A DNA stretch of 63,813 bases, counting the filler, from Hyphochytrium catenoides (lineage: Eukaryota; Protista; Hyphochytriomycota), in the NCBI GenBank assembly GCA_900088475.1. It is 10 parts of 10 records of this genome, joined end to end, with 100 filler letters (N's around TTAATTAATTAA, not from the genome) between each part and the next. Parts side by side here need not be neighbours in the genome. Positions count along the whole stretch, not along the records: positions 19,963 to 45,587 come from FLMG01002559.1; 9 more parts are not named here. One strand, 5' to 3'. Shown here in pieces: positions 20,886-45,043 of this stretch. The position numbers were made by a program, and so were the translations under genes. Numbering within the stretch: position 1 is the first letter of the stretch; each line of letters starts with the position of its first letter. The notes beneath the pieces are model-generated. The model ran no database searches. It saw only the letters and a program-made list of their open reading frames with translations, and was not told the origin of the DNA.

Positions 20886-21523
20886 ATGTCAGACGTCGAG
20901 ACACCTAGCAAGAAGGACAAGGACTCCAAGTCCTACGAGGAGAAGGTTAAATACGTCTCCGCAATCTCGCAGCCCCTTGCTAGCAAGAAGCTTACGAAGA
21001 AGGTTTACAAAGTGGTAAAGAAAGGTGAGTCTGCCTTGAAACGAAGGAGGATCTATGAGATGCTGACTTCCCTTGCAGCGTCCAAGGCGAAAGTAGTGAA
21101 GCGCGGTGTCAAAGAAGTGGTGAAGGCACTCAAGAAGGGCAACAAAGGGTACGCGATGTGTGAACAGACAAACAATTGTCGGATGACCTAAGCTCAAACT
21201 CGTTTCCATTCCTCTTAGACTGTGTATTGTTGCTGGAGACATCTCTCCAATTGACGTTATCTCACACTTGCCCATCCTGTGCGAAGAGGCCGGAGTCCCC
21301 TATGTCTATGTTCCATCAAAGGTACAGTAACCTACCGTCACCTAGGTCTTTCAATAGTGTTCTTGAACTAACGCTAGGTGTCTCCCAGTCTGACCTAGGA
21401 ACAGCAAGCTCGACAAAGCGTCCTACCAGCTGTATCTTGGTGGTACCTTCCAAAGAGTTCGACTCAAAGGACCTTCTGGACGAAGTCAAAGCCGAAGTTC
21501 AGGCGATAACACCAGCGTACTGA
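20886..21523 (+). CDS. NHP2: H/ACA ribonucleoprotein subunit NHP2 (L7Ae family), 4 exons
   Basis: Spliced protein: ISQPLASKKLTKKVYKVVKK|ASKAKVVKRGVKEVVKALKKG..|LCIVAGDISPIDVISHLPILCEEAGVPYVYVPSK|SDLGTASSTKRPTSCILV. Confidence 0.93.
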
Positions 21524-23490
21524 AGCATTTATCTCTTGCTCTAGCGACTGTCCTTATATAGCCATACGCGGTAGCGGCCCGCAAGTGAATCCGCGACCCT
21601 GCCACAGGGTGGAGACCTTTCTGCCGCTCCCAAACTCTGTATCAATAGTAGTTAACCCAATGCTATTCTCTCTTTTCTGGGAAATAGTCAGCCTTCTTTC
21701 TATCCTTGTGCCAATGCTGCTTGCTAACCGAGCTTTTAAGATGGTTACTTTATGAAAGCATCATTATTTCTCACTCCAAGGTGCCCATTCTCCGCGTGGC
21801 GCGCAAAGAGCAGTGGACAGTCGTGCGGGCTGACAAACGAGTTTCTACGTGGCTGCGTGTTATCTTATGCCACGCTTACTCCCTAATGCAAAACCTGTAT
21901 TGAAAGGCCCGTAGGATGTGGTTGGTCTAACGTCTTTAGTGATCCCCATTGCCATAGTATGCAGATCTACCCATAGACTGTCGTGCCTAATGGTCAAGTC
22001 CAGCCGCGACAGACAAGTCGGGGTATGGCATGGCGGACGACAACCCTAGAGAAAGGCCCCACTCCCGTCCACTAGAACATAGGCTACAGGCGCTGTCCCA
22101 CGCAATTGATGTTGAGCGCTGAACGCCTTGCCGAACAACTTGATGGTCCTTTGTGGTGGCTGAATATGAGCAGAGGCTCTTGACAACTAACTAGATCAAG
22201 CGAGCAGGATAACGGATAGGCAAGTAGGCTTTCACGCCGAGCTATAGCGAGAGCCTGCTCTCTTCATTCACTCTGTTGTTGTGAAGAGTATCAATACTTT
22301 AGCAAGACATTTGCGCGAGAGAAGAGGCCTCGAAAACTAATTGGGAGTAAGGGCGAGAGATCCTTGGCGGGGTCAGCTCACTGGGGATTGAGTTCAAGAG
22401 TAAAGCGGAGCGGACAGCATGGCTTCTTCACCAATCATCAGCTATCAAGAAAACTGAGTCTGTTTGTGCCTGTGACTCAGTTCAGCTTAGGCATTTTACT
22501 TTCATCTGCAAGCGCACAGTATGCGGTGCCTTTTGCGGCCTTTTGCGCTCAAGCTTAGTGGTTGTGAGAAGTGGAAGAAGGCGATGACGCGCAGAAAGGC
22601 TGCAAGATGGAGATAAGAAGCCGCCGTCCCAAGCTGCCGCCTGAGATGTCTCCACGCCAGCCAAACGGTTGCTTAAAATGTGTTGCCGTCTATAAAAGCG
22701 GTCATTATCTCTTTTGCCCTTTGGAGAGGAAGTCAACGCAATGGTCATCAGGAGGATTATCTTCCACGGGGAAAGGAGAAAGAAGAACAATAACGAGAGC
22801 TTTATTCGAACATGAAGAGCCCTCATACTAGGAACCTGCCTTTTACATGGGCCAATCTAGGCGCGGAACTTTTGTCTCTTCCTCTGTGGCGGCAAGAAGA
22901 CGCAATGGCAGTTGTTGAGCTGCGGCCATCATCTCCATCCTCAATCATCAATCACCGTTAGCAGTGATCGTGCCAGCGCCAGAGCAACAAGTTCACATCG
23001 GGAAGTGACAGGGGATGTGATTGTCGATTGTAAATAATAAGATCATCTGTTAATTCTTACAGTAAGTGATTATATGTGTGAGATAAACAACATTATCCTT
23101 ATATATTTTTTAACTCACTTGCGTTTGTTGACATTCGGGTTGAGAATTTACAGCTATTTTGGCAGTAAAAGACGGCTTTATGAGTGACAGGCTTGTTGGC
23201 TGACAGCTGATTGGGTGGAGCGGTAGGGAGGGAGTCACAGTCATGAGACAGAGCCAAACGAGCGACTACTGGACAACAGAGATAGGTTATCGCCTATTGT
23301 TTATAGGGTTAATTGCACAGACAGAGGGGTCTACAACTAGAAAGAGTCTTCGAGGTGGAGACTTGGGTAGGTTTGCTTTGGCCAGTGTGGTGCCTCATCA
23401 CCTGAGACTTCAACCTCATCATCAGAATGACAGGCGAGCCAGGGCAGTGCAGTGTAGGCGGCGCTTGGCTTGGAAGAGAGGCGGACAGCA

Positions 23491-23626
23491 AGAGACAGAG
23501 AGACAGAGAGAGAGAGAGACAAAGAGACAGAGAGACAGAGAGACAGAGAGACAGAGAGACAGAGAGACAGAGAGACAAAGAGACAGAGAGACAAAGAGAC
23601 AGACAGACAAAGAGAGGGAGACAGAG
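23491..23626 (+). repeat. (GACAGAGA)n octamer microsatellite upstream of CBS
   Basis: Tandem 8-bp units are visible directly. Confidence 0.9.
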
Positions 23627-23829
23627 ATAGAATGTGGCGAAGAGAGAGGAGGCACAGAGCGAGAGAGTGACAGAGATAGCCGTTCTGAAAGAGCCAGCAC
23701 TTGCAACGATAGCAGTGGAAACAGAGACATTGTTCTGGGCTCTGTGATAACACTCTCAGTCTCTCACTTTCTGCTTACGGCCAAACCTCTGAGGACTGCG
23801 GTTAGACAGAGTTGAGTCAAACGAGAACC

Positions 23830-26800
23830 ATGCCGCCAGCAAGAAAGAGAAACGCTTCCGCGGAGGCAATCGAGGTTAATGGCGCACCGTCCGCAGGCAG
23901 CCCCGCCACTGTCAAGAAGGTAGAAGTGCTTTCTCGTCTCTTTTGGGATGGGTCTGTAGGCTTCCTCTCGTGAGCCGCGTCGTCATTGTCATGTCCGCTT
24001 TGCTTCTTTGTCACACCGTTTTCTCAATCCCTCCTGCTCGAGCGAACTCTTCATTGTTAGCTCTCTTCTAGAGCTTCTACTTTTTTCTCAAACTAGTGTC
24101 ATTGCTGCCATTATGACTCCTAGACCAAAGCCGTCAATGCCAAAGATAACTGCCCCGCCACGTACCGCGCTGGCAGAGAGGATGGGCCTCTAAAGTGCAC
24201 ATGGTATCCGAACGCCAAAGAGAAAAGTGCACACCTGCACCAGCCGCGATGGCGAGAGCCCAAGATCTGCAGCACAATCTTGGATCACATTGGCAACACG
24301 CCTCTGGTGCGCATCAACAAAATAACCAAGAAAGCTGGCCTTCAATGTGAGGTGCTCGCCAAGTGCGAATTCTTCAACGCTGGTGGCAGCGTCAAGGACC
24401 GTATTGGCAAGGTGAGTAGGGAGCGGACGGACCTCTCACCTCTTTTGATTTGGTCTGCTTTCCCGTTTGACGCTGCTTCGTTTGACGCTTCTCACAGTTC
24501 CCGTGATGGTTTTCAGCGTATGCTCGGCCCCGCTGTCTCTCTTCTTCTCGCTCTCTCGTTCCCTCTCGCTCTCTCTCGCTCTCTTTTTTTCTTTCTTTCC
24601 TCTCTCTCTCTCTCTCTCTCCTTCCCTCATCCCTTCTAATTTTCTTCTCATCGGACCTCCATGTATTGCACTGGCTCCACTTACGTGTTTGTTTTGAACA
24701 TAGAGAATGGTTGAGGATGCCATGGCTTCGGGCCGCATAAAGCCGGGCGACACTCTTATTGAGCCAACGTCAGGCAATACAGGTACTTCGGGCGTACTTG
24801 CCTTTATTCTAGCTACTCCTCTCTTCTCTTTTTCTCACTCTCCGGACTGGGACAGGCATTGGCCTTGCTCTGGCAGCGGCAATCTATGGCTTCCGCATGA
24901 TCATCACTCTTCCCGAGAAGATGAGCAAAGAGAAGGTGGACGTGCTCAAGGCGCTGGGGGCGGAAATTATAAGAACACCGACCGAGGCAGCTTGGGACTC
25001 GCCTGAGAGCCACATCGGGGTTGCCAAGAGACTCAACGAAGAGATTCCGAACTCTCATATCCTGGATCAGGTGAGAAAGAGAGATGAGGAAAGACTGCAT
25101 GCTGGGCTAGCGCAAAAGGCCAAATGGCAGTACGGACGGCTTGTTATCAATCTAGAAAAATGGGGAATCAAGGCGACTAAGTCCGCACTCCCTCTCTCTC
25201 GCGCTCTCTTCCTTTGGCTTCGATCACGCAGTACTCGAACCCTTCAAATCCGCTGGCTCACTACGACCACACGGCTGAAGAGATTCTTGAGGCTTGTGAT
25301 GGGCAGGTCGATATGCTGATCGTATCTGCTGGAACTGGAGGCACCATCACTGGCCTGAGTAGAAAGCTTAAGGAAAAGTGCCCCAACGTTATCGTTGTGG
25401 GTGTCGATCCGAAGGGCTCCATCCTGGCAGAGCCAGAGCCTCTTAATGACGACATGGTAAGAGATGACGGAGTATGGAGTCCCGATAGGACCGCGAAAAG
25501 AGGCAATGAGAGGGGAGCTACCTGACGTTGCAAGTGAAAGGGAGAGAAAAGGCTTTCAAGTGAGCGAGACATAGCATTTTCTCTTCCGTATTCTGCTGGC
25601 TTTGCTGTATCCTTTGCACTAAGTTTGACACTCTTCTTCATTCCTCTCGCGTCTGACAGAGGCTCCAACCTTACAAAGTAGAGGGCATTGGCTATGACTT
25701 CATCCCTGCGGTGCTAGACAGGGAAATGGTAGACCGCTGGTACAAGGTAAGAACTAATAGTGCTAGAACAGCTAGCTCAACGCAGCTGCAGCGGGAGGGA
25801 TGTCGTCGTTGTTTTAGGGAAACTTGCGCTTAGATCTACGGGCCCTTCAATTCGAAGTGTCTAGCGCTTTGCAGTTACCGAGATGTGACTGACCAGCATC
25901 CCGCTCCATCTTTCTTGTCTTCGTTCTTTATGACCATGGCAATGGCATAGTCTGAGGATAAGGCATCATTCATCATGTCCAGGCGGATGATCCGGGAGGA
26001 AGGTCTCCTCTGTGGTGAGCATCATTGTCCCAGCCTATTGTATCATCTCCCCAGACCTACCTAGCAGTGTGTGTCTCTTTGGTGTTAACTCTGTACTCTT
26101 CAGGCGGCTCAAGCGGAAGTGCGATGTGTGCAGCACTAGAGCATGCAAAGAGCCTAAAGGCAGGACAGAAATGCGTTGTCATTCTTCCTGATTCCGTCCG
26201 GAACTACATGACGAAGGTAAACTGGCCTTCTTCTCGTTACTCATATTCTTTCGGACCTTTCGTGGAAAGGGTAGCAAGGACACGTCGTCGCTGGTCTCTC
26301 TCTCTCTCTGGACGATCCTAGTTGTTGTTCACGCCATTCTCCTTCGAAAGGTGACGGGCCATGTACACTAAGTCTTCTTTCTCTGTTTTTCTTAGTTCCT
26401 AAGTGATGACTGGATGTATGAGAATGCCTTTGTCACTGATCCGTCAAGCAAGAATCAAGTGGATGCGTGGTGGGCAAGCAAGCCTGTCTCAGAGCTACCG
26501 CTTCAGGTAAGGTGTCATCGGAAGCGAGACAGGGCGGCTGAGAAGGACAAAGATGATTGAGAGAGCAGGAGAAGATGGAAGAAGAGTGAGAGGCGGATGG
26601 AAATGGCCGTTGAAAAGCTCATGAAGGTCTTCCCTCTTAACCATCTAGGTGCCGTTCACTATTTCTTTGAATGTATCTTGTAAAGAAGCTGTGGATATCC
26701 TGAAGGAACAGGGTAAGTTGCAGCTCCCACTAATCTAACTTGCCTTTTCTGGTCCTAACTGCTAGCCTTCAGTAGTACGCCGATAACCTTCAGAAGGTTT

Positions 26801-27437
26801 CCCTAGATGTGAATTTCTTACATCTGATTTCTCCTCTGTCTAACGCCTATAATCGCCGTTTACAGGCTTCGACACGCTCCCTGTCGTGACAGAATCTGGC
26901 ACTATCTGCGGAGTGGTGAGCGAGGGCGGGCTGATGAGCAAGCTAGTCCAAGGAAGAGTGTTAGCATCGGATCCAGTCTCAAAGGCGATGTACACTCAGT
27001 TCAAGACGGTGTCGCTCCGCTCTTCGCTAGGAGAACTCTCTCGCATCTTGGACCACAATCACTTTGCTCTGGTTGTCAGCGAACAGAAGTGTTATGGTGT
27101 AGGAGGACAGCAGACCACGAGCACTGTCATCACCAGTATCGTCACGCGGTAAGGATGTTATCAAAAGGTTCTTCTGTTCAAGATTGTCTCGCGATGGTCC
27201 TCCCTCTCTTTGTTTCTCTCTCTCTGGTTGATGCTGTTGCTTTCTTCAACCTTCGTCACTACCCCTCGTTCACTACGTCTTCGTTCTCATTCACAGCTTG
27301 CTGTTCGTTGAGCTTTACATCTCTATCTCTCAACTTTCTCGGCGTTGGGTCTGACGTTACTCTCTCTATGCTGAATTCCCTGCAGAATTGATCTTCTGAC
27401 CTTTATCACAAGCGGGCCGGACGGACAATCCTCGTAG
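23830..27437 (+). CDS. CBS: Cystathionine beta-synthase with N-terminal heme-binding motif and C-terminal CBS (Bateman) domains
   Basis: [26 protein letters not shown] (PLP lysine), IEPTSGNTG|[57 protein letters not shown]|[18 protein letters not shown]|FLSDDWM and VTR|[10 protein letters not shown] at 27435-27437. Confidence 0.97.
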
Positions 27438-28027: not shown

Positions 28028-31000
28028 TTAAAGTGCGAGATGACCCCGACTGCTTCCCCGCGGCTTGTCCTTTTTAACCTTGCCCGAGAGGAAGTAAAAG
28101 CTGGCGGGATTGCTAGTGTTGGGCCCAGCGGCAGCGGAGTCACCGGTGAGGGCAAAATCTGGATTATTCTCCAGCATGGTATCCAACAACTCCGAAAAGC
28201 GTGGGTTGCTGTCCATCAGCCCCTTAAGGACGTCCTGCTGTGAGGAGGTAGAATCTGGTGTCTCTATGGCTGATATTCTGGTCAGGTAGTCCAAAAGAGT
28301 CTCGAGGCTGTCTTCGTACCCATAGCCCTCCGCGAAGTGAAAAATCTTACTTCTAGAGAGCGTGTACTTCTTGCCTATGGTCGAATTAAGAGTGAGAAGT
28401 TCCCACCAATGAGGTAAAGAAATAGCTGAGGAGGAAGCGTTCCAAAATGGAAAGAGAGCAGTGAAGAGACTTAACAAGAGGCGGCCACTTAACAGTTGGT
28501 CAAGGACTGGCAATTAACAGAGGATAAGTCTTAGGGTATACACCCAAAGGAAGAGAAGAGTGCGAGAAAGCTAGCAGGGATTTTTTGAAGTAGCCTCTCA
28601 CCTAAGTCGATCTGTGGTGTGGACAAGAACACTGGAATGATAAGCTTTCCTCTATCCTCTGCAAAAGCAAGCTGATCATTCAGGATCTCAGACCCAGCCG
28701 ACTTGTCAGATATAACGCAGATAAAGGCAGCACACTGCAGGATCGCGTCCTTAGTCACAGATATGCGCTCTGTCGTATCCTTGTAAAGAGCCTCGCTATC
28801 TACGAAACATCGGTACCCCTTATCTCTGAGAGATAGGTAGAGACCACGGACAAAACGTGTTTGTGTGTCTCCGTGTGCTACAATGGAAAGAGCAAAAGCG
28901 GACGTTAGAGGGAGGGAGATCATCCGTAGCACCGGTCCACTTCACAAGGAAGATATCTATGAACGGAGGGCTGCCGCAGAGAACTGAAATGTAAAAGGAG
29001 TCATCGAGTAAGGACAAAAAGAGCATAACCAGCACGTTGCTCGTGACTCGTCGAATAGGCGCAACATAGAGAGACAGCCAGTGACATCCTAAGCCATCCT
29101 CATGTAGAAATCTCTTAAGTAGCAGTCTGCCCCCCTTACGCCCTACTGGCCCCTCATGCAATTTAGGGGATTTATCATGCGTGAGCTGCCCCTTACCAAT
29201 AAATAGGAAATTTGTCCCTTCAATCATCGTTTGGTCGAAGCGTAAATTGCTTGAGAGGAGCTCACTCTTGGGTCCGACACCTGATACAGCCTGATTCCTC
29301 TCTATTCTTATGCGATTGAGCTCATCCTTCACGCCATCGGCCAATATCCGGACCTTGTCATCGAAAGCAGTCTCATCATACTCAAAGACGACCTGCCTGG
29401 GGTCGACGACTGTCCGCTTGGTGAGGGCTGTCTGGAACGCTACAATCTGTCGCGTATATAGTAAGACCTGCACGACGGCAAAAGTCGATGGAATAAGTTA
29501 AGGAAGCAGTAGGAGAGAGATATGTTTGTAGAGGATAAAGCTAGAGCCACATAGACATAACATTTGCACTGCCTGGATGTTGGCAAGCAATGATCTTGTC
29601 AGTCCCTACCTGCAGCTCATCACTGACAGTGAAATCCTCACAAGAGATGGCAATGACGGGTTTCTGCAGCTGCTTGGCCAATGCTAACTCCTTGAGGCAC
29701 CACTCACTCCTCTGATAGTCCTCGGAGAGGATGCAAATCATCAGGGACGCGTTCATTAAACCCCTTGCTATCTCCTCCCGCCACACTGCGCCTCCACCAA
29801 TGCCATTGCCATCCACGGCGGTATCCATCCAGGTAGTGATGCCTGTAGTCGAGAACAAACAGACGGAGAGATGATAGGGCATGAGCCTGTGGTAAATCGG
29901 GTACAACATATGCTCACTAGGAGCATGGCGCTACTTGCAGAATGTGAGAAGTTCAAGAACCGAAAGAAGGACCTGGAGACAGGAGTAAATGCCCTGCCTT
30001 CTTACCTAGAGATTCCAAACGGTCTCTAACCTTCATCGTAAACTCTGAATGCGAATGCGTATAGCTATTTTGATCCGTGTAGGTTAAATAAACGTCGAAA
30101 GGGCATCGAATTAGCTCACCAGACGATCGTCAGGAAGTGAGGATAGCACTAACCTAATCATTGCATCTCTGGCTCCTGCTGCCCTTTTAATCATAAATAG
30201 AAGCTCCGCACTAGTGGTACATTCCAAGGGCCGCTTGCCCTCGCGATTTATGCGGGTAAGGTCCGCTCCTGCTCGTAAGAGCGAGAGCGCTATCCAAAGA
30301 GGATTAACGACCGCAGTTAAAGAACAAGAATCACCTAGGTGAGCAACTTCCTCTCTAGAAAAACCAGCGCTTCTAACCCTCACCTGTGCACGTATTGCCG
30401 AGCTTGACAGCAATATGCATCGGGGTGTCTCCGTTAGGAAGGCGAACGTTGACATCTACTCCTGCGCTAACTAATGCAGCCAGGACCTCTTCCGAGACTT
30501 GAAGGCCCTGCATTCGGAGTGTAACACGGACGATTGGACGTAAACAGGTAGGATATTGACACGGACGATGGACGTAAACAGGTAAAATATTGAGATATAG
30601 AGGGTTGCGGATGTTAAGCTCGTCAACGCCATCAGTCCACAACCAAAGAGCAGTCGCCGCACCTGCGCACCGCAGAGAATAGGACACATCTGGTCATGGT
30701 CTTTGGTGTGGATATTAGCTCCCGCATACAAAAGAACCTTCACTACCTCCACTTGATCATTCCGGACTAAATAAGAGGGTTATTAGAATCATTTGTGTCG
30801 TAAGCCCTCTTCACGTATGCAGCGAAGCCCGCTTGTTCTCGCTTATACCCCATTCCCCTCCATATATGCCACAATGTCAAACCTGTTTACAATCCATCGG
30901 ACATCTCTTTATTTCGCTGCCCTCTCTCCCATCCGGAGTTTAACATGGGGGTCTCTCTTCTCTAGCGCACCTTCCTTCACTTACCAGCCCAGTGGAGAGG

Positions 31001-34000
31001 GGTTCTCCCTTTATAGTCCATAGCATCTAGGGTAGCTCCAAAGCGAATCAAAGTTGCAGCAGCATCCGCACATCCAGCAATCGCTGCCCAATGTAAAGGA
31101 GAGCGATAGTAGAGTCCATTGCACTGTAGTGACATAGAGATAGGGAATATTCAATGAGAATCAGCCTGAAATTGAAATCTTGTCGCGTGCTTTACTATCA
31201 AGAAAGGCCACCCAAACCGAGCAGAACGAGAGGATTACCTTATCTCCCAAGCAATCCGCATTAGCTCCACTTCTCATGATTTGAATAATGCGCTTCACAT
31301 TGTTCGTTGCTGCAGCCGCATGTAGTGGGGTCAAGGGGACATCTCCTCCCCATTCCTCAAACACTCTGACCAGCATGAACCGGCCGCTGATCAAAGCTCG
31401 AAGAAGAGCTGTGCTGCGCTGACACACCAAGAGATGGTTGGCTGAGGAGAAAATGATTAGCTTATAGAGAAGGATGTGGCTCGTGAACCAGTCACAGGTG
31501 CACCAACCTATAGGGTCACAAAGGATCGCCTCACGATACAGGGTTGTACATATTCTCTACTCTTACCTCTGTGCGCTACCAGCACGTTTACGACCTCCGG
31601 CGATTCTGCCAAAAAAATAGGAGGTACCTCCTCGAAACGGGAAGACGAGACCGTCAGCTGATTGACATCGGCACCGTGTTGAACAAGCCAAAGCACCGCA
31701 TCCGCATGACCATTAGCCACCTAAGAGTTATTCATGAACATTGTTCGAGGTGAGCGACATCACAACCGGTAGGACTGCTGCTCTGCGTTATTATGAAGAC
31801 TCAACGCAGTGATATAACAACGGAGTAGCAATGAAGACACCCGCAACGGTGTGAAACGCAAAAACGTAAGGAGAATGCTTACCGCAACATGCAAGGGGCT
31901 GAGTAGTGTCTGCTCGAAGAGCGAGTAATGGCCGTAAATCGTTTCGCGTTGCCGGTGCGAGTCCTGTCCCCGTCGTCTAAGCCAACCAATCCGGCTGACC
32001 AGAGCTTCATAACCCTCTGCTACCCGAATCTGGATCCACATGACAAAGGTTAGGTTTAGACTCGAAGAGCTCGTCCAACATAGTAGATTGTGAAGAAATA
32101 GCGAAAAGGCTAATGCCGGAAGACAAGCAGCGAAAATGGGAGTGCTGTTGACCTGTATCCGATTCATTTTATCCAAGCTGTTGATGTCGAAGCCAGCTTG
32201 TACTAAGACCTCCAGGACGTCAACGTCGCCTAAAGGAACGAATTGGTGAATAGACCAAAATCAGCCATCCAAAACGCTTCTGAAAGCCCGCCAGCGCCGA
32301 CTTTGCCGTTTCAAAGAAGGTTACATTGCTCCTGTGCCAAACAAGTATCCCTTACCTCGAGCGGCCGCTGCATGAAGAGGGTTGTATGTTGATGTGGCAA
32401 AAAACCCTAGCGACAGCTTCGGAGTCCGGTACATGTGCTGATGAAAGCCATCTCCGAGAGCGGAGGACGCCTCGATCAACGTCTTTTGCAGCTCATTGAC
32501 ATGACCAGAACTGGCGGCATGATAGAGTAGAGTTCTGAAGAGTCTCTCATTCTTACTTCTCCTTGAGAAGCAAAGCAGTTTGGCTATTCCACATGTTACG
32601 ACGTACTGATCACGGCTAAGTGTAACGCCCAGCTGCAGTCGAAAATGATCTCTGAAGCGGTGATACGCTAGCACTTGCGACCACATCAGGAAGTATGCTA
32701 CGTAGCTACAAAGGGAAGAAAAAAGGTTGATGATCCAAAAGGTTAATGATTCATAGAAGAGCAGGATGAGCTAGATTTAGATTTGCACATGTGAAGTGAC
32801 TGAAAAGCACCAAGCCGACAGCACAATTATGAAAGAACGGGGACGCAGTAAAGAGCTACAGTGGGGCTGTTTAGTCAGCATGGAAAGAATATACGATAAA
32901 TCAATAACACAGCCAGAGATGAGGAAACCTCAATCGAACGTGTAAAAAGATGTGAACTAGAAGGACTGACCTGACGACAATGTTTGCCCATACTGCTAGT
33001 AGAATTGTGATCGACGTATCCAGTAGGGCAGTGGTGCAATCCCAGTAAAACCCGGCTACAGCGTTCCAGAGGATAACCACTACCACTCCGACGCCCGTTA
33101 ATGCCGATATAATGACGACAGAGTCACAAATTGTGATATACCAGGTACGCTGATAGACAGAATTCATACGGTTCCGGCGGTAGAGAAAGAACGGGCGCCA
33201 ACCCAGAGTGGCAAACCCTAAGACCACTGTCTTAAGCACAGTACACCCGGTAACCAGCGAAGTAGTAAAGGGCTTCACGCACTCTCCGTGGTAGACAATA
33301 TCCTTTACCATATCCCGTGACTTTTCGTCGTCGATAGCGGATATCTGGAAGAACAGTGAGAAGTATGAAATGAGCGCCAAGGGAGAAAGAAGGAGAAAGG
33401 CGATGTCAATACGACCCAATGGGCTGGACGGAGAGCAAGCATTGTTTAGAAGAACCCGATGTTAGGTAGCATACTTCAGAGTAACCCATGATTAGGTGGG
33501 ACGTGGAAGCATTAAGTGAAGAGAAGCCTACACATTCCATCATTTCAACGCCAGGTGAGGAAAGGACATCAGGTGAAGGCTTCTGAACGTAGGGTTTCTT
33601 ACCCTATTAGGAATCCAAAAGAATTGGTTTACTCCCATGAAGGATAGAACGAAAACCAACTGGATAGTCTTGAAGAGGAGAGGCCAGCTGACGTAGGAGT
33701 TGGCTAGAGCCCCGCGGAATGATCTTGGCGGCTGTTCTATTTCCTCCTTGGAACGTATACTGCCCTCATGATATACGCTCTCGCGATGGATCCGTCGCTG
33801 CTCAAGGCTGTTGGTTCCGCAGAGACGATAAGGGTAAGTGCAGGCCTCCCAGCAGAGAGACAGACAAAAAGGAAATCTTCAAGCTACGATAACGGAAGAG
33901 CAACAATCCGTATGATCAATTGTTGGGGTAAAATCCTATGCCGTTTACCTGGGACGGAAGCTCCTCGTCATGTCCCCAATGGTATATCGGGGCGCCACGT

Positions 34001-34490
34001 AACGATGGTCTCGTTCTAGTTTTTCAATTGTATTTGGTCCCGATCGCTCGACGCCATAACGAGCAATAGAGTCCCGCGTTGTAAGAGGCAATATGCGATC
34101 AATTTTGGCTCCAGAGGTAACAGAGGAAGAGGACCGGAACTATATCGCCAAATGACAAAGATAAAGACGATGGAAGGCTGTGTTAGAGGGTAAAACGAAG
34201 AGGATGTTTGGTTTGCCATTCACCTTTGCTTGCTGCAGGGGTATGGAGATGGCACTCTGCCTCATCTGGACGTCAGAATTGCGCATGGGGAAAGCCGGAG
34301 ACACTGACGGATGGTAGTTGGTTGTTTCTCTGGTGGGATCTGGGGTGGTTGCGAGCGGGCTTGGCTCCATTTTGTATACATTCTTGCTATTCTGGCTCTC
34401 TAGAAGCACTTTAATCCGAGGAGGAAGTTCAAGGCTTTGGTTCCTTCTGAAACTCCTGCTCAACTCGGAGCTCCTGTCTCCGTCCTCCAT
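28028..34490 (-). CDS. Multi-exon protein: disordered N-terminus, 2-3 transmembrane segments, ankyrin repeats, two TIR (TIR_2-like) domains
   Basis: Hydrophobic exons at 33345-32650. Ankyrin motifs: LLYHAASSG, NPLHAAAARG, SPLHVA|VANGH, TPLHAAAATN, SPLHWAAIAG, TPLHWA and DTPMHIAV. TIR1: DAMISYTH...GITTWMD...WREEIARGL..ICILSEDYQRSEWCLKEL. TIR2: FLFIAHG...GYRCFVD...ICVISDKSAGSEILNDQL..IIPV. Confidence 0.87.
30524..30592. repeat. Intronic tandem duplication, about 35 bp x2
   Basis: ACACGGACGA(T)TGGACGTAAACAGGTA(GG/AA)ATATTG occurs twice. Confidence 0.9.
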
Positions 34491-36078: not shown

Positions 36079-37335
36079 TCACTCATCGTCATCGCCTCCG
36101 CCACGCGCGGCACGTTGAGACGTCGGTATTCCTTCTGACTTCTCCGCAGTAGCAGCTTGAACATTGTAAGAAGTCTCGATGGCTGGCGAAAGCGATGAGA
36201 CGAAGGGCTCCTGCCCCTCATCCTCAGAATGCACCAAAGTTGCAGCATCTACCTCTCTCTGATCTATTGTCTTACTCTCTTTCGATGGTATCGCAGACAC
36301 CTGGTATTGGAAGATGCTGGACTCTATCAAGTCTTCCACAACTGAGCGGACGATTAGCTCTGTCTCAGTGCCTGACTGAATCACATTCACTTCTTCATAC
36401 TCTCCCTCTTCGGGGATTGGCTCCAACCTTGTCCTTTGAAACGGGAAAGAAGAAGACAAGTTCTCATTCGTCTTCCGCCCATCGCGATGCCTCTTGGCAG
36501 ATCGTTCTAAGAAGTGGCACGAGACAATGCATGCGCTGAGAAGAATATACCGCCTTCCAGGCAATGGTTCGGCCATCAGAGCACCAACTAAGATGGCAAT
36601 GGAGCCCACCAGGCCCCAAACAGGACCGATCACGGCATCTACAAGCTGGAACATCAGCACCAAGAGCAACAGAATGCCAGAGACAGCTAGTGCAATCAGT
36701 GCTAGGCCCATGGAGTTCTCCCCCAAGAAGCCGTAGGTCCTAAAGAATAAGGTCTCAGCCTTGGAGACGGTCACTGTCCCTATGTCCTTTACCAGGTTCC
36801 ATAAGTCTTCTAGGAATATGGTGACTTCTAGCCAAATCTTTCTCCGAGTACTCTGCAGTAGTATTTCCTGAATCTCTGTTTCCACTTCTAAGCGATCTTT
36901 GGCCAGTTCAGCGTCTTGCCGCACGCTCTGAATCCTCTTCACGGACTCGTCTGAGAATCTCTCCAACAGACTTTTGATATCATCCGAGCTCAGAGATCGA
37001 AGATCGTTCTTCTCAACTCCCTTTCCGATTGCTGAGCCTGCCGATGACGCTCTGCGTGCGACAGGTGGTGCCTTCTGAGACGCCGTTGGCTTGTCGTCCA
37101 GTCCCTGATATGGAGCGGCAGTGTCGTCATCTTCATCCGTACTCATCAAGACTGCGATGGCGCTTTCTAAGACATCTGAGTCCAGTCCCTGAAGAACGCT
37201 CCAGTCCGGAGCCTCTTCAAGAGCTGTGTGGTCGCTCTCAACGCCCATTTCAAAAGCCATTGATGCGCTTTCTACTAACCCGAGGGAGAAGAGCCCCCAG
37301 CTCACCGCCAGCAAGAGCGCACCTGTCTTTCTCAT
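36079..37335 (-). CDS. Intronless 418-aa uncharacterised membrane protein (signal peptide, acidic/coiled region, 2-3 TM segments, acidic tail)
   Basis: Long non-repetitive ATG-initiated ORF. The N-terminus MRKTGALLLAVSWGLFSLGLVESA looks like a signal peptide. Hydrophobic stretches: MGLALIALAVSGILLLLVLMFQLV and IGPVWGLVGSIAILVGALMA. Confidence 0.7.
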   Translation of the reverse strand: MRKTGALLLAVSWGLFSLGLVESASMAFEMGVESDHTALEEAPDWSVLQGLDSDVLESAIAVLMSTDEDDDTAAPYQGLDDKPTASQKAPPVARRASSAGSAIGKGVEKNDLRSLSSDDIKSLLERFSDESVKRIQSVRQDAELAKDRLEVETEIQEILLQSTRRKIWLEVTIFLEDLWNLVKDIGTVTVSKAETLFFRTYGFLGENSMGLALIALAVSGILLLLVLMFQLVDAVIGPVWGLVGSIAILVGALMAEPLPGRRYILLSACIVSCHFLERSAKRHRDGRKTNENLSSSFPFQRTRLEPIPEEGEYEEVNVIQSGTETELIVRSVVEDLIESSIFQYQVSAIPSKESKTIDQREVDAATLVHSEDEGQEPFVSSLSPAIETSYNVQAATAEKSEGIPTSQRAARGGGDDDE

Positions 37336-38365: not shown

Positions 38366-41300
38366 TTATGAGTCGTCTGCAAAGCGTACCCTTCTCCTGG
38401 CTGAGGGCCTTACTTCGTCTCCATCCAGCTCTGCTCCGTCCGTAATCCCTACCGCTGACGTTGCTACCAAAGGTGAAAATTCTCTCCTCGGGTCTGCCTT
38501 TTCTTCCGGTACATTAAGCTTTCTCTCTGGTCCTCTCTGCACTGCCTCCACGAACTTCAAATTCTGCAGCAAGAAATGCAGGCGCGCTTGATCGTTCCCT
38601 TTCACTCCTTGCTGCGTGAACAGAAGGCACATGCAGACAGAAAAGTAGCAAGATTCCAGAAGGATAGTTAGACAAACAGGGCAGCCCTTTCTTAACCCCG
38701 ATTAGCAACTTTACGTCCTTCTTTTGACATTGTGTCTCTCTCTTCGTCTCGTCCCATTTCACGGCGGGATGCTCGTCCAACATCCTCGTGGCTCCTCCGC
38801 TGCCACTACCTTACCTCTGCATTGTTCCTCTGATGCATGACAAGCTCCACGGTATCATCCATTATGAGCTGCTCAACTACTACGGAGCTCTTTTGGCCGA
38901 GCCTGTGTGCCCTGCTGATAACTTGATCCTCTAAGCTTTTATCCCAGATCTCGTCCATAAGAAATATGTGGGTCACGAATGAGAGGTCCAAACCGTGGGC
39001 TCCTTCTTTGCATAAGAGTAGGACAGAGACGCCAGGATCATCTCTAAAACGCTGAGGGCAGCGAACAAAGCCAGCGGGGAAAACCAGAGAGTCAGACTAA
39101 ACAAGCGAAACCTCAAGTGAACGGCTCGGTAAATGGCGTTGGCCACCGGAAGATAAGAGCACACGAGAGAGAACGCACAGAGCCGTGTTCCCAGACATGC
39201 CGTCCCGGACTGCAAGACACCACTAAGAGCTGATAGGGAGATATCCTGCTAAGCAAAGAACCAGGGCAGAATACATCCAAGCCGATGGAGCCAAAACTGT
39301 GGGGGTGAGGGCACTAAGATAAGAAACCTGGGATAGGCAGAACTTGCCTACCTGCAGCTCCAACGACCGCTTGCTCCCGAAGAAGTGAGCAACTCTGAAC
39401 CCATGCGAGGTGAGCGCCTCTTCGATGCCATTCAAGTACATGCGGAACTGAGAGAAGACGATGGCCTTTAGAGCAGACACTGGCTGAGGTCGAAGCTGAC
39501 GAGGAAGGGATGCGAGGTTCGCATAAAGATTGTCTCGTTCATTCCTTTTTTTCTCTAGATCTTTCTCTCTTTGAACTTCTCGCAACCTTTCTATGAGGTG
39601 CTTCGCCTTGGACACACTTTCCCAGCTGCTGTCCTGATCAGACTCATCATCTTCCGCAAAAAGGACATCGTTATTTCGCCCTCTTTCTCCCACGTCAGCA
39701 GAGCTAGACGGCAATTGAGAGGGCGGCAAAGGCTGGAGGCCCACTGTCTCGTTTCTTAAGGTGTTCCGTTCAGTCACTTCCGTTATAGATGCAGGCGAAT
39801 GAAGAGATGAAGCTGCTGGTTGAGAGGCGGTGGTGCCAAGAGCTGGTGGCACCGCAGAGGAAGCTGAAGGCTTGCCTCCTGTAGCAGGAAGGGCATCGTG
39901 CCATTTCCAGTTGAGCTCAAAGCCCGGTTGTATGGCCTGGAACTCATCTGTATCAAAATGTCTCTTGCACACCGCGCAATAAGGCGTAAACTCCCAAGGC
40001 GAATTGTCTTCCTCTCCCTCTTTTCCTGATGCCTTCGCACTCCCTCTCCGTGTCACTTTATCCATGCATAGGACGCAGATAAGGTGACCGCATGGCGTGA
40101 GAAGGACTAGCTGGAATTGCTGGAGGCAATATCCGCATTCTTCTCTAAGACCTACCAAGTAAAGACAGACACATAATCATAGGAGAGATTGGCAGCAATG
40201 AGGAAGCTGTCGACACGCCGTTCGACCGCGAGCTAAAGAATTGGACCAAAGCTAGCCCACTATCTGCCAACGCATATCCATTCCTCTGCCTTCACTAGTC
40301 ATACCTGCGGTTGCTTTCCTTATCATTGTTCGCGCCAAGTGCAACAGCCGTCGGTCGGTGCACCACGAGAAGATACTGTTAGCACTGTGATTATAAGCAA
40401 TCTGCTGAAGACCTCCGCCGCAGCAAGCCACCCTATAGGCCAGCAATGAGTAGAGTAACCTCGGTACTTAGTGGAGCCCAGCAAAGACGCCAGGCAGTAG
40501 GCAGTACGTTCCTCTATCGACATTAAAACCTTCATGACATCCATCCAGCATTACCTGAGATTGTGCAGTGTTTCCATCGCGTACTTGCGGTTGGCTGGGT
40601 TTAAGAGATTATCTGGATGTCTAGGGCCCGCCGGATGGTTACCATCCACCATGCCTATTGGCAAGCAGGACATTAGCACCAAAATAAAGGCAACGAGCCT
40701 ATAAGACGCTTGGCACCCCTAGCAGACCGCAATTACATCCAACAATATCAGTAGACTTGACACCGGAACTAGCATCGAAGTCAACAGCTTGACTTGGCAG
40801 CGCACATCACACAACGTCTCAAAAACAAGGCGGTCATGGACTAAACAAGGTGGTTTGGATCTCATCACCGGTCCATGGACCGAAGAGACCCGAGATGAAG
40901 AGAATGAAGAGCAGAGAAGGTCGTCCACAAGACGTCGCGTGCCGCCACCAACCTGTGATGATAAGATTCGCCAGGCAGAAGCTGGCAATTGTATTGTATG
41001 AAGCGGCTTCAACAGGTGACATCCGGAGCACCCGATGAATTCGACTTGGGGGTCGTAGTTCGTCAATTGAAGACTGAAAAGGAGAGCGTTAGCCCTTCTG
41101 CAAATAGCTTTCGTAATCTCATCAACTCTCTGTTAGCAAGCCTCTCGTAGTGGCTTATGCCACCACTTTGTTATATCTTCATATTCAGGCTTTTTTCACG
41201 GTTTATCTTACCTTGAGATGTCTTATCATTATCCGCTGTACGATGTCTCTTAAGCGCAGGAACGCCCGCAGCTTTTTCGCCTGGCATAATGGTATAGGCT

Positions 41301-44300
41301 TAGTGATAGAAGAAAGGTCTTGAATTGGAACTATGAATGGTATATGAGTTGCTCTGTAAGACCAATGTAAGTTCTCAATGTGTCAGCTCAAAACATAAGA
41401 CCAGTCATAAATACGGCGTAGTAAAGCCTCCAACTATTGAGAAGAGCTCAGCATAATGTGATAGCCAAAGTGAGAGCTAACATGGAATGGCTGTGCCACA
41501 AGGTTATTCCATCTTCCACCGTCATCTCGGCCGAAGGAGTGATCGCCCAAAAAGCGTAGTAGTCCGTAAAGATACTTAAGGTCATTGCTCGTGGATGTGC
41601 TGGGGGTTGGGGTGCCTAGGGAGACAGCGGGAAAATAAAAAGTAAGGCCTGGCAGTATGTAGTATGGTATGCGGTGGCTCTAGGCAGGCAATGACTCTGC
41701 GCTCAACCAGCAATTGCGAGAGGCACATGTGACGCAAACAAGAAGACACAAAATGACAGACAGACTAGAAAATAGAAGACAAAGGCACGGCAAGGAACTA
41801 GGACAGTACCGGTCATGACCCACTTATACTCGGCCTTTAGAGCCGACGCCAACTGGCCGGCATCCGTTATGCTCAAAGTCCCTAAAGAGTGGCCCTGACC
41901 GGTCATATGACACGATAGAACGTTAGAATAAAATCCCTAAACGGTGCCAAGCTAAACGGTGCACAGCGAGACAGAGTGACCGATGGCTCCGTCAAACTGC
42001 CGAGCACGACATAGAGCATGAAGACTCTATCAGACTGCAAACGGGGGACATAGGGAATAGGGAGTAAATTGAACGAAAACGTTGGCGCCTTTCTAAACTG
42101 GCGGACTAACGACCAGACGTGGCCCACCTACAGGTGGCCGTTCACGCTGTCTTCCGTCCATGGCAATGAGCATGGGCATGACCCTTCCACCGTTCAAGAT
42201 TGCAAAGCGAAATGCACAAAGCTGCCTCAGAAGGACAAAAGAGCAGAGGACGACGCTCTTGGCGCTGTCTTGGTAATTGTACCTCGTCTATGATAACCCT
42301 GACCCAGTAAACCTTAAGTAGGTTGCTGACACGCAGTCGCTTCCCTCCGGGTACTCCAGCGCCGCCATAGAACACTTCGTCACGGAGTCTCATTGGCAAT
42401 CTCTCCTCTGCGTAAAATAAGGTAGCAACAGAGGTAAACTAGCTCAGCGAAGGCACGGATTGTAGGGTCGTTCATATCCAACGCAAAGTGATTCTGCCTC
42501 GGGACAGAGATGCGGCATGACAGAGACCCTAGCCCAAAGAGGAACAGCAACCGAGACACAATAGGCTCATAACACGAACGGAATTCTGATGGTTGAAATG
42601 GATGCAAATGGTCAAAGGGAAAAGGAGGGAGAGGTCAGCATACCTAGAGCACAAGCTGGCCTTCCCTCTCTCCATTCTAAGGAAAGTCTTCTAAAAGTTG
42701 TGACCACAAGTTCACAGCTTGCCAAAGTCTCAGCAGAGGGGAGAGGTTTCGTAACACGATCAGAATCAAAGAGGATTCTGGAAAGCGAAGAGGGTGAAAG
42801 ATGCTTCTCCAGTTGACTCTTCCAGTGGCCCAACAGAGGGGAAGGTACAATAATAAGAGTTGCGGAAGACGAAAGAAGGTCTTCTCCTCTCACTTCTCTC
42901 TTCCTTGTCAGAGGTGAGCGAAGATGATAACCCTCGACCTTTCTCTCCATTGCCTGCTGCTTAACTGCTGTTACCGACGTCTCTCTCCCATCTCTATACC
43001 CTGAGTCCTGCACCATGACAGAAGGTGGATGAGATGTGGGGACAGGAAACCTTGAGGCTTGGGTCCCGGCCCTCATTCCTCTTGTTTTTGCTATCAAGGA
43101 GAGGCAGGTGACTGTCTTTCCAAGACCCGGCTCGTCACAAAGCATTCCACCCGGAATGTCAGGAAGACTTGGGGTAGGGCCAACCAGGTAGTGCCCAGTT
43201 ATGAGGTTGACATTTATCATCAGTCCTAGACGCAGTGGTGAACAGTAACAACCACAAGAGGAGGCACATAAGATTGAAAATAGTGTTTAGTTGTCAGCTG
43301 TGACACACCTAACGTTTGCGATAGTAATAAGGAATTAGGGGGAAACAACCAGAAAATCGGCAGGAGGAACACTTAGCGAGAAGCTGACGATGGATGAAAC
43401 ATTTTAGAGGAATTCCTGAGACTTCTTACGGGCACTTATACCTTCAGTTGTCCTCAATGGTAGATAAAGAGGATCTATAACCGCCCTCTTTTTGGCTTCC
43501 CTTCCCATCATCCACCTAAGACAGCGAACTTGGTGCGGCAGTAAGCGGAGGATTGCCCCAGGCACAACTGCCATGGACACATTGCGGATGGACCTAAGGG
43601 ACAACAATGCGGTCAATGTACGTGGGATATCGGAGACACTCAGCAGATATAGCAAACGAGATGCGGGCTCGAACCTGGCAGAATCACCAAAGAATAAGCA
43701 CAGGAGACATTGCGTGACTTAGGGCAAACTCAAGATTTTGACTAGCGTCGGAAGCGGACTTATGGACAAGAGACACTCTTCTAACCTTACCGGCAAGTCA
43801 CTGACATGCGGCCTAGATCTGTAGGCCCTAAAAAGTTGAGGACGATCTCAAGAGTGTCTTGAGAAAGAGGGGACAGAAGACCCAAAGATTGAAGAAAGGA
43901 TCGTTCCTCTGTGATAAGCTTCGCCTTCCATTCTCTCTCATGACGCTCATCTAGAAGCTCCTGAGCGCTTTCGTAAGCAGAGCTAAGAGTAGTGGACGGG
44001 GGATGGACTTCCTTTTCTCCAACCACTCTTGGCAAGCAAAGATCCGAGCTCTTTCCTACCACGTTTCCTTGCTCCTCACCCTCTACGTCATTCGACCTCA
44101 TGCATGCCTGTTGGCAGTCCGAGATAACGGAGAGCAGAAAGAGCTTCTTCTGTAGATGTTTTCTGTTCCTGTATACAACTTCGTCCTTCAAATTCAACTC
44201 TACCTCAAAGAAGAGTTCTGCCTCCAAGTCTGTTTGACAGCTTACCTGGGCTTCAAAGGTAAGCTGTGACCAAAGCGTTTGCATTGAAAGGTACGGAGGA

Positions 44301-44922
44301 CCAAGAGTGAGATGACGGCCACGTGGTGAAAGAGAGTGAGAAGACGAAAGCAAACCATAATATGAAGTAAAGAACGGAAAAGTGAATGGCCACACGCGAA
44401 AGCAAGAGCAAAGGCAAGAACTAAAAGCAATCACAAGGTTGGCCCAAGGGCGGAAGGAAGAGTAAACAGAGCAGGTACACACGAGAAGAGGTGCAATGAT
44501 ACCTCTCCTTCGTCTTCCAAGAGCAAGAGAGCTCGCAGCACCTCTCCAGAGGTGACGGCAGCTGTTTGTGCAGAGAACTTTGTCGGTGGCTTTCTATGGG
44601 AAGGGGTAGTAGAAGCGAATGCATTTTTATCTTTTGAGGAGGAGCGTTTCCTCTTTTTGCTGCTAGGCCCGCAAGCAGAGGATGAAGATGAGGAGAGAAA
44701 GGAGGCCGCAGGGAGAGCTTCATCTCTGTGAATCGCTGGAATATCATAGAGAAGAGTGCCAGTAGAAGAAGACATTTCCAGATAGGAAGGTCTGAGAAAC
44801 TTCACTTCTTGGGCTTCTTGTTCCCCGTTTACCCTTGGCTCCACGGCTTCTGGGGGCCCATTCTGCACCCTTTGAAGGGGCGTCAGCCTCACCTGCAGGC
44901 GCAAACCTCCCAAGCAGGGCAT
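38366..44922 (-). CDS. F-box + SNF2-family helicase with RING insert (Rad5/16-like; resembles the Arabidopsis At3g54460 type)
   Basis: F-box LSPLSQDTLEIVLNFLGPTDLGRMSVTCR; LLPHQ..LRWM; GGMLCDEPGLGKT; TLIIVP; RVIIDE|GH; WVMTG|TP; RING CGYC..TPCGHLICVLC..CAVC; KAIVFSQF; GAHGLDLSFVTHIFLMDEIWDKSLEDQVISRAHRLG. Confidence 0.9.
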
Positions 44923-44997
44923 TTTAACGTCGCTGCTAGTAGAACTTCTGTAAGCTCAGAGCTCCGATCCAGCAGACCTCCGAGAAGAGAGCAGCAG

Positions 44998-45043
<46 letters not shown>

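Follow-up and report, generated by a model that had tools for sequence, protein, structure and literature searches.

A tetraspan ankyrin-repeat protein of Hyphochytrium catenoides with a catalytic-type and a glutamine-type TIR domain belongs to a family conserved in oomycetes

TIR enzymes are an immune and cell-death currency common to bacteria, plants and animals, and those that cleave NAD+ (NADases) turn active when a neighbouring TIR reshapes their BB loop. In SARM1 (TIR-1), helical repeats precede an enzyme-type TIR; the protein is membrane-associated, is encoded by a conserved low-copy gene rather than by a receptor repertoire, is kept off by its ARM repeats, and has its TIRs brought together by SAM-driven octamerisation. 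Toll-like receptors (TLRs) join an LRR ectodomain to a single transmembrane (TM) helix and one TIR, and the plant TIR receptors RPP1, ROQ1 and RUN1 combine their TIR with NB-ARC and LRR domains. Precedents for the pairing of an active with an inactive TIR are the asymmetric TIR dimers of the resistosomes formed by plant TIR-NB-LRR receptors (TNLs) and the heterodimer of RPS4 (active) and RRS1 (inactive). To our knowledge, almost nothing is known about TIR enzymes in protists; the oomycetes include major crop and animal pathogens. Here, we describe a minus-strand gene in a 63,813-nt stretch of DNA from the hyphochytrid Hyphochytrium catenoides (assembly GCA_900088475.1; ten parts joined end to end, hereafter “the window”), located in the part that comes from record FLMG01002559.1. 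The gene encodes a predicted protein with four TM segments, ankyrin repeats and two TIR domains, TIR1 and TIR2. Our overall best explanation, to which we assign a probability of about 0.6, is that this is an expressed tetraspan protein that would carry on its cytosolic side an ankyrin solenoid and an enzyme, TIR1, with TIR2 as its built-in partner.

The 1224-aa product runs from a low-complexity N-terminus (aa 1-180), predicted to be disordered, through the four TM segments, the ankyrin repeats, TIR1, a short linker and TIR2 to an 80-aa tail. Like SARM1, it places helical repeats ahead of an enzyme-type TIR, but the repeats are ankyrins, the anchor is an integral tetraspan domain, SAM and ARM are missing, and a second TIR of non-catalytic type stands in the place of the octamerisation that brings the TIRs of SARM1 together. 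In contrast to Toll-like receptors, it has no LRR, four TM segments with short outer loops, and two TIRs. With the plant receptors it shares the WCLxEL helix, found in its TIR1, whereas it has neither NB-ARC nor LRR, is predicted to be membrane-embedded and carries two TIRs per chain. Ankyrins and TM helices also occur together in TRP-CC channels and in ACD6-type plant ANK-TM proteins; here, however, four helices lie N-terminal to the ankyrins, rather than the six of TRP or a C-terminal PGG-type domain. Neither the window exons nor six homologs gave a Pfam match to LRR, NB-ARC, NACHT, SAM or ARM; lacking LRR, NB-ARC, SAM and ARM, the protein is therefore not a TLR, an NLR or SARM1. Ion-transport, TRP and PGG domains were likewise without a Pfam match in the window exons and the homologs, no TRP protein was among the fold-search matches, and the TRP-CC name that several orthologs bear is almost certainly driven by their ankyrins alone. 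The combination on one chain of a tetraspan anchor, a catalytic-type TIR and a conserved Gln-type TIR is a new variant among TIR systems. A previous description of the locus from its sequence (the first-pass annotation) had set its architecture apart from those of TLRs, NLRs and SARM1. That distinction stands; any uniqueness does not, given that the layout defines a conserved family found in eleven oomycete genera.

To delimit this family, relatives were collected in an exhaustive search with the 77-aa TIR1 exon, which yielded 681 proteins at E<=1e-3 and 79 at E<=1e-10. The named top matches are all from oomycetes (Lagenidium, Pythium, Phytophthora, Nothophytophthora, Plasmopara, Albugo, Achlya, Thraustotheca and Aphanomyces) and contain ankyrin repeats and two TIR_2 domains; genomes of the four species counted hold from 2 to 4 or more paralogs each. 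Against the Pythium insidiosum protein GLE04463.1 (hereafter P0006), BLASTP of the window protein gave one collinear alignment from aa 184 to 1137 (38% identity, ~955 aa, 658 bits), and similar alignments were obtained with some twenty further proteins; other oomycete examples are P. insidiosum GLD96598.1, Achlya hypogyna OQR96094.1, Albugo candida CCI44432.1 and Plasmopara halstedii XP_024583368.1. The oomycete proteins and the window protein have the same elements in the same order (4 TM segments, ~12 ankyrin repeats, a TIR with Glu and a TIR with Gln), are 38-41% identical over about 900-955 aa, and have the motifs GIGGGxVWREEI, SEWCLKEL and DQLAFAED in common. With its full-length collinearity, its membrane domain and both TIR motifs, the window gene adds a member to a family already represented in the databases, and the design itself is conserved, not a one-off. 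No protein identical to the window protein was among the search matches, and the best identity within the set used for the tree was 41%, to Achlya. A quick maximum-likelihood tree resolved three oomycete subfamilies and placed the window protein as sister to one of them (SH-aLRT 92); the window protein falls outside the sampled oomycete clade, and its gene contains 17 introns, where the Pythium gene has about one.

This difference in intron content allows the architecture to be read from a simpler locus. In P. insidiosum, one open reading frame (ORF) of 819 aa comprises the membrane domain, all ankyrins and the start of TIR1, and a second ORF carries the remainder after an intron of ~60 nt. 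Because the TM-ANK-TIR1 frame is unbroken at this intron-poor locus, the architecture is independent of splice prediction, and taken by itself we regard it as practically certain. The earlier view of the locus as a single membrane-anchored ANK-TIR-TIR protein of a protist is thereby borne out, with the collinear homologs pointing the same way. Outside the oomycetes, we found the cassette ANK-TIR(E)-TIR(DQ[L/V]A[F/L]AE) in a protein of the choanoflagellate Salpingoeca kvevrii (EP00050_P007220), where it follows a PA domain, and in an MMETSP transcript of a marine protist, where it follows LRR_6; contamination of the transcriptomes is possible in both cases. Neither of the two showed a strong hydrophobic segment at the threshold used. 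A full-text literature search returned a single relevant statement, the mention by Lapin et al. (2022; PMC9153377) of “uncharacterized ankyrin repeat-TIR proteins” in oomycetes; it returned no account of the membrane domain, the tandem TIRs or the Glu-to-Gln state. Among the relatives, Lagenidium giganteum DAZ99117.1 (2664 aa) contains two full tetraspan-ANK-TIR-TIR units one after the other, which belong to different subfamilies, and represents either adjacent paralogs merged by annotation or a true fusion. The next-best TIR1 relatives outside the family contain 3-7 tandem TIR_2 domains, and one of these (P0019) is encoded on a contig of the bacterial metagenome-assembled genome GCA_030633385.1.

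Both members of the TIR tandem were recognised by Pfam TIR_2 (PF13676, in one superfamily with TIR, PF01582) above its curated cut-off of 28 bits: the TIR1 ORF at 1.2e-11 (45.6 bits) and the TIR2 ORF at 3.2e-9 (37.7 bits). In TIR1, codon 29690-29688, which the first-pass annotation had singled out, is GAG and encodes Glu901 within the helix-C motif SEWCLKEL. In sequence and profile searches against solved structures, this motif aligned residue for residue with SSWCLDEL of RPP1, STWCLEEL of Roq1, SVWCVREL of RPS4 and SDWCWDEL of Cat1, which puts Glu901 on their catalytic Glu; the profile matches of TIR1 comprised Cat1, Roq1, RPS4, RPP1, RUN1 and SARM1. TIR1 thus has the W-x-x-x-E pattern of NAD+-cleaving TIRs with its catalytic Glu in helix C. 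Across the family, the Glu is invariant (28/28 rows) and the Trp is present in 25/28. For the fold, AlphaFold2 models were made of P0006, with the window exons as alignment rows. VIA-align of the TIR1 model returned human SARM1 as the best structural match (Z 15.6), followed by RUN1 and RPV1 (Z 15.2), with the SPARTA TIRs also in the range of Z 14-15.6 and C. elegans TIR-1 and Hydra TRR-2 likewise among the closest. In the model, TIR1 ends in a helix of ~39 residues that runs into TIR2, and its Gly-rich BB loop (GIGGG) is conserved and has low model confidence, as would fit a mobile BB loop. TIR1 keeps every sequence hallmark of NAD+-cleaving TIRs that was checked; it would be an NAD+-consuming enzyme, and we consider enzymatic activity of TIR1 rather likely.

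TIR2 has a different signature. Its first strand, NFLFIAHGD, is interrupted by intron 16, and its codon 28674-28672, identified earlier as the aligned site, is CAG and encodes Gln1086 within SEILNDQL. Two comparisons assign this Gln to the catalytic position: a profile of 25 TIR2 domains, which matched Cat1 (2.7e-6) and RPP1 (3.6e-5), aligned D-Q-L-A with the D-E-L-A of these proteins, and direct BLASTP of TIR1 against TIR2 within one homolog (E 1e-8) set Glu opposite Gln. In 29 family rows, the site is Gln in 24, Thr in 2, and Ala, Glu and Asn in 1 each, the Asn row being probably misaligned. The Trp-equivalent position is aliphatic in almost all rows and Trp in none, so that TIR2 has neither of the two residues and would be a pseudo-TIR, as first proposed. 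The TIR2 alignment shows no variation at the flanks of the DQLAFAED motif (Asp79, Ala82, Ala84 and Glu85). In one divergent oomycete subfamily, the motif has been lost completely. Because the Gln and its flanks are conserved across the family, the Gln in TIR2 is not a product of decay. Soil metagenomes contain near-identical DNA, and also a contig that is 87% identical over the TIR2 exon; this contig has 19/19 listed differences that are synonymous and at third positions, 0 that are non-synonymous, and a Gln codon changed from CAG to CAA with Gln kept, a pattern that we count as support for purifying selection on TIR2. By its sequence, TIR2 is a constrained TIR of non-catalytic type with its own signature, and the pair is probably one active TIR and one pseudo-TIR. 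In the model, the fold of TIR2 is seen as a secondary-structure pattern only. Foldseek on the two-domain TIR model gave mostly unrelated two-domain Rossmann-like proteins (SIS domains), and VIA-align then gave clean TIR matches. In both DNA runs, a separate contig (845 nt in one and 92 nt in the other) matches only 28634-28678, the 45 nt that encode DQLAFAED, at which it differs in 5 positions, and probably stems from a paralog at another place in the genome.

These data also bear on the view that both TIRs are pure interaction scaffolds, which would recruit TIR adaptors at the membrane in the manner of TLRs and MyD88, with no enzymatic step. The TIRs of MyD88 and of Hydra TRR-2 are indeed good sequence or structure matches too, and TIR2 is certainly devoid of the catalytic residues. 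The conservation of Glu and Trp in TIR1, however, is the pattern expected of an enzyme and is not needed in a scaffold, and the best structural matches are NADase TIRs. We therefore consider a purely scaffolding pair unlikely.

The first-pass annotation had counted at least seven ankyrin repeats, which turned out to be an undercount: Pfam Ank matches fall on exons 5, 8, 9, 10, 11 and 12, 11-12 repeats can be told by eye, the region matches the homologs repeat for repeat over each exon junction, and Ank_2 scores of the homologs range from 1e-32 to 1e-77. Hydropathy identified four hydrophobic segments, at aa 194-218, 249-270, 289-314 and 333-360, in agreement with the TM segments that had been noted. 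In the family alignment of this domain (P0006:100-352), N32, C94, C151, C181 and F207 are nearly invariant, and the recurring features are an Asn ahead of TM1, one Cys in each outer loop, a Cys-Glu in TM3 and F-x-R-F-R-x-H past TM4. Arg-rich segments lie before TM1, in the TM2-3 loop and after TM4, while the TM1-2 and TM3-4 loops are acidic or Cys-bearing. Because this distribution of Arg fits the positive-inside rule, the protein is predicted to have an N-in/C-in topology, with the N-terminus, the ankyrins and both TIRs in the cytosol. The outer loops would then measure ~30 and 18 residues and leave no ectodomain, so that the label “receptor-like” that the locus had been given is not supported. 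A further stretch, RIDIAFLLLSPLALISYFSLFF (around 33420-33350), is intronic in the final model and may have been counted as a TM segment by the earlier reader.

The same domain could itself be the output device: in another explanation, the protein would be sensor and effector in one, with tetraspan domains that assemble into a pore or channel. The cytosolic ANK-TIR module, or the nucleotide that it makes, would gate this pore, and the response would be an ion flux or permeabilisation of the membrane. The tetraspan layout with a conserved Cys in both outer loops suits this idea, several orthologs are auto-annotated as TRP-CC channels, and the best fold matches, weak as they are, are tetraspan proteins. 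In the AlphaFold2 model of the P0006 membrane domain, the four helices form a bundle and the cytosolic loop contains a beta-hairpin (predicted local distance difference test score, pLDDT, 79; predicted template-modelling score, pTM, 0.74), and VIA-align matched it to PRPH2 (Z 10.2), uroplakin (8.6), synaptophysin and LRRC8A (8.4) and connexins (7-7.4), with MS4A in the same range. The tool itself, however, rates Z 7-10 as common and non-specific for helical bundles. With the same model, Foldseek returned nothing below E 0.1 from the PDB, and nothing beyond E 1e-2, with TM-scores <0.5, from the clusters of the AlphaFold database; an ESM Atlas feature search with the domain scored 0.79 or less. 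Adding that no ion-channel Pfam model matched, and that the non-stramenopile cassettes have other N-terminal parts, which makes the TM domain exchangeable, we find a pore improbable.

A diversifying innate-immune receptor, in which the ankyrins recognise pathogen molecules directly and TIR-dependent cell death follows, is equally improbable. TIR enzymes do act in bacterial, plant and animal immunity, a repeat domain joined to a TIR is a common receptor logic, and TIR1 also matches models of bacterial defence TIRs. Against this stand the small number of paralogs per genome in the four species, the collinearity of the orthologs over eleven oomycete genera, in which the ankyrins can be aligned one to one, and the lack of any hint that the family has expanded or varies in the way that receptor repertoires typically do. 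Because copy number is low and the collinear conservation is one-to-one, the family points instead, by analogy, to a conserved signalling or cell-fate enzyme with SARM1-like logic.

That the locus is split into two genes, or is a pseudogene interrupted where ANK meets TIR1, was suggested by a first model that could be closed only with a 35-nt intron, which is implausible, or with a frameshift at 30150-30115, and is effectively refuted by an ordinary 89-nt GT..AG intron that restores the RDxMISYTH strand of the family, by DNA contigs with no indel, and by exons that are all open and collinear. At this junction, the homologs read KRAAGxRDVMISYTHxH, and splicing of intron 13 gives RDAMISYTHSH in the window protein, which is the true first strand of TIR1. 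The junction model that used the 35-nt intron had retained the TIR-like CPFDVYLTY and was rejected on the homologs' RDVMISYTH. An assembly error or frameshift at 30115-30150 was ruled out by independent contigs from two DNA runs of the source organism, which show zero differences over 28474-32239; with no indel in them, the frameshift concern at the junction is removed. In addition, in a 233-nt contig of a run labelled “RNA?”, 28373/28374 is joined directly to 28601/28602, and exactly the 227 nt of intron 17 are left out. For the last two exons, though for no others, this demonstrates transcription and splicing. The locus is a single gene with open and collinear exons, and it is not split. The TIR-like CPFDVYLTYTDQ (about 30105-30070) sits within intron 13, and in this intron the stretch CPFDVYLTYTDQN is an in-frame close mimic of a TIR first strand that is open into the frame of exon 14. 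It may be a chance likeness or a relic of an older exon boundary, and it would mislead automatic gene callers. At 28348-28503 (intron 17), both DNA runs hold two versions at about equal depth, which differ by 9 substitutions and a 1-nt insertion; the source organism therefore appears to be diploid and heterozygous.

How such a protein might work can be outlined from its parts. TIR1 would most likely consume NAD+ and produce ADP-ribose (ADPR), a cyclic ADPR (cADPR)-type product or a related nucleotide. The active site of a working TIR enzyme takes shape only with the help of a second TIR. We infer that TIR2 is this partner for TIR1, supplied within the same chain, and that it keeps TIR1 either open or closed; since its pseudo-active site is so conserved, TIR2 may also bind NAD+ or the product without cleavage. 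By analogy with the SARM1 ARM domain, the ankyrins could regulate the protein or bind a ligand, and the four-helix membrane domain would anchor the protein and probably oligomerise it.

Several points weigh against this explanation of the protein as an expressed enzyme with a built-in partner. TIR NADases require the helix-C Glu, and this Glu alone does not guarantee NADase activity. The literature search found no functional or enzymatic data for the family. TIR2 might equally be so strongly conserved because it binds a ligand or performs another chemistry, rather than because it is a partner. The structural models are of a homolog that is 38% identical to the window protein, and in the model of its TIR pair (mean pLDDT 85, pTM 0.55) the domains are confident and their mutual orientation is not. 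As for expression, no RNA run was listed when the whole gene was queried, and a second query listed one “RNA?” run with 5% of the words, which is the source of the sole splice confirmation, so that RNA supports 1 of the 17 introns. Finally, aa ~1-180 (exons 1-2) have no support from homology, and intron 6 (32020-32124) has a weak donor, GTCTTC, and no support.

A broader interpretation, which we put forward tentatively and hold to be doubtful, is that ANK-TIR(Glu)-TIR(Gln, DQLAFAED) is an old and widespread eukaryotic cassette in which a dedicated pseudo-TIR is permanently linked to an enzyme TIR and serves it as an obligatory partner or as a nucleotide-sensing subunit. It would then be a new class of TIR enzyme, with an activation that does not depend on homo-oligomerisation driven by SAM, NB-ARC or filaments, and in stramenopiles it would be coupled to a previously undescribed tetraspan domain that is possibly itself an effector. 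Regardless of this interpretation, the locus and its relatives define a conserved and experimentally untouched family in oomycetes and at least two other protist lineages, and the fixed combination on one chain of a catalytic-type TIR with a Glu-to-Gln TIR amounts to a natural experiment on the assembly and control of TIR active sites. If TIR1 is active, NAD+-derived signalling would exist in stramenopiles, and the protein would offer a tractable model in one polypeptide, in which the partner TIR is built in and an assembly of identical chains need not be assumed. If the membrane domain is an effector or a channel, the family would be a eukaryotic counterpart of the bacterial defence systems that combine a TIR with a membrane effector.

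The gene model (Table 1) was built by hand from open segments in shifting frames that were linked via GT..AG introns, and one junction was corrected from the homologs. It consists of 18 exons and 17 introns of 84-319 nt, every one of which is GT..AG and keeps the frame, and the ends of its coding sequence coincide exactly with the limits first proposed for the locus. In size, its exons and introns are similar to published values for H. catenoides (228 and 208 bp; PMC5795050).

Table 1. Features of the gene model, in positions of the window
Feature	Position	Strand	Remarks
Whole coding sequence	28028..34490	-	ATG at 34490; stop ends at 28028
Exons 1-6	34490-34224; 34139-33949; 33807-33603; 33344-32971; 32705-32356; 32229-32125	-	
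Exons 7-12	32019-31883; 31720-31567; 31441-31239; 31123-30985; 30766-30663; 30507-30384	-	
Exons 13-18	30289-30154; 30064-30006; 29842-29610; 29467-29197; 28877-28602; 28374-28028	-	
Four-TM (tetraspan) region	32663..33686	-	aa 194-360, exons 3-5; hydropathy and family alignment
Ankyrin-repeat region	30174..32530	-	aa 405-823, ~11-12 repeats, exons 5-13; Pfam and collinear alignment
TIR1	29291..30170	-	aa 825-986, exons 13-16; Pfam TIR_2, profile matches, homolog model
TIR1 catalytic-type Glu	29688..29690	-	GAG, Glu901 of SEWCLKEL
TIR2	28271..29215	-	aa 1012-1144, exons 16-18; Pfam TIR_2, profile matches
TIR2 site equivalent to the catalytic Glu	28672..28674	-	CAG, Gln1086 of SEILNDQL
Intron 17	28375..28601	-	227 nt; spliced in RNA contig
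Intron 13	30065..30153	-	89 nt, GTTAGT...AATAG; holds decoy TIR-like stretch CPFDVYLTYTDQ

Two other introns have features of their own. The length of intron 6 is a multiple of three and it contains no stop codon, so that it could be retained, which would add 35 residues within an ankyrin repeat; the length of the homologs appears to be better matched by the spliced form. Intron 11 (30508-30662) contains an imperfect direct repeat of ~35 nt, with TTTACCTGTTTACGTCCATCGTCCGTGT... present twice.

The surrounding DNA is intron-rich and eukaryotic in character, with ~49% GC. Two plus-strand neighbours, read from ORF translations, lie at lower coordinates, upstream in the window: 20886-21523 has the look of an NHP2/L7Ae-type protein of H/ACA ribonucleoproteins, and 24280-27160 that of a multi-exon cystathionine beta-synthase with a C-terminal CBS pair. 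Between them, 23243-23815 is a purine/pyrimidine-rich low-complexity repeat that is open on both strands (RETERQRD-type and SLSLCLSV-type translations) and is probably microsatellite-like and intergenic. On the other side of the gene, the minus strand of 36079-37335 holds an uninterrupted ORF of 418 aa with a signal-like N-terminus and central hydrophobic segments, for which a word-index protein search returned no homolog. It is followed by a multi-exon minus-strand gene at 39223-45000 with the SNF2-type helicase motif LCDEPGLGKT and a RING-like Cys pattern, which by eye is SHPRH/RAD5-like.

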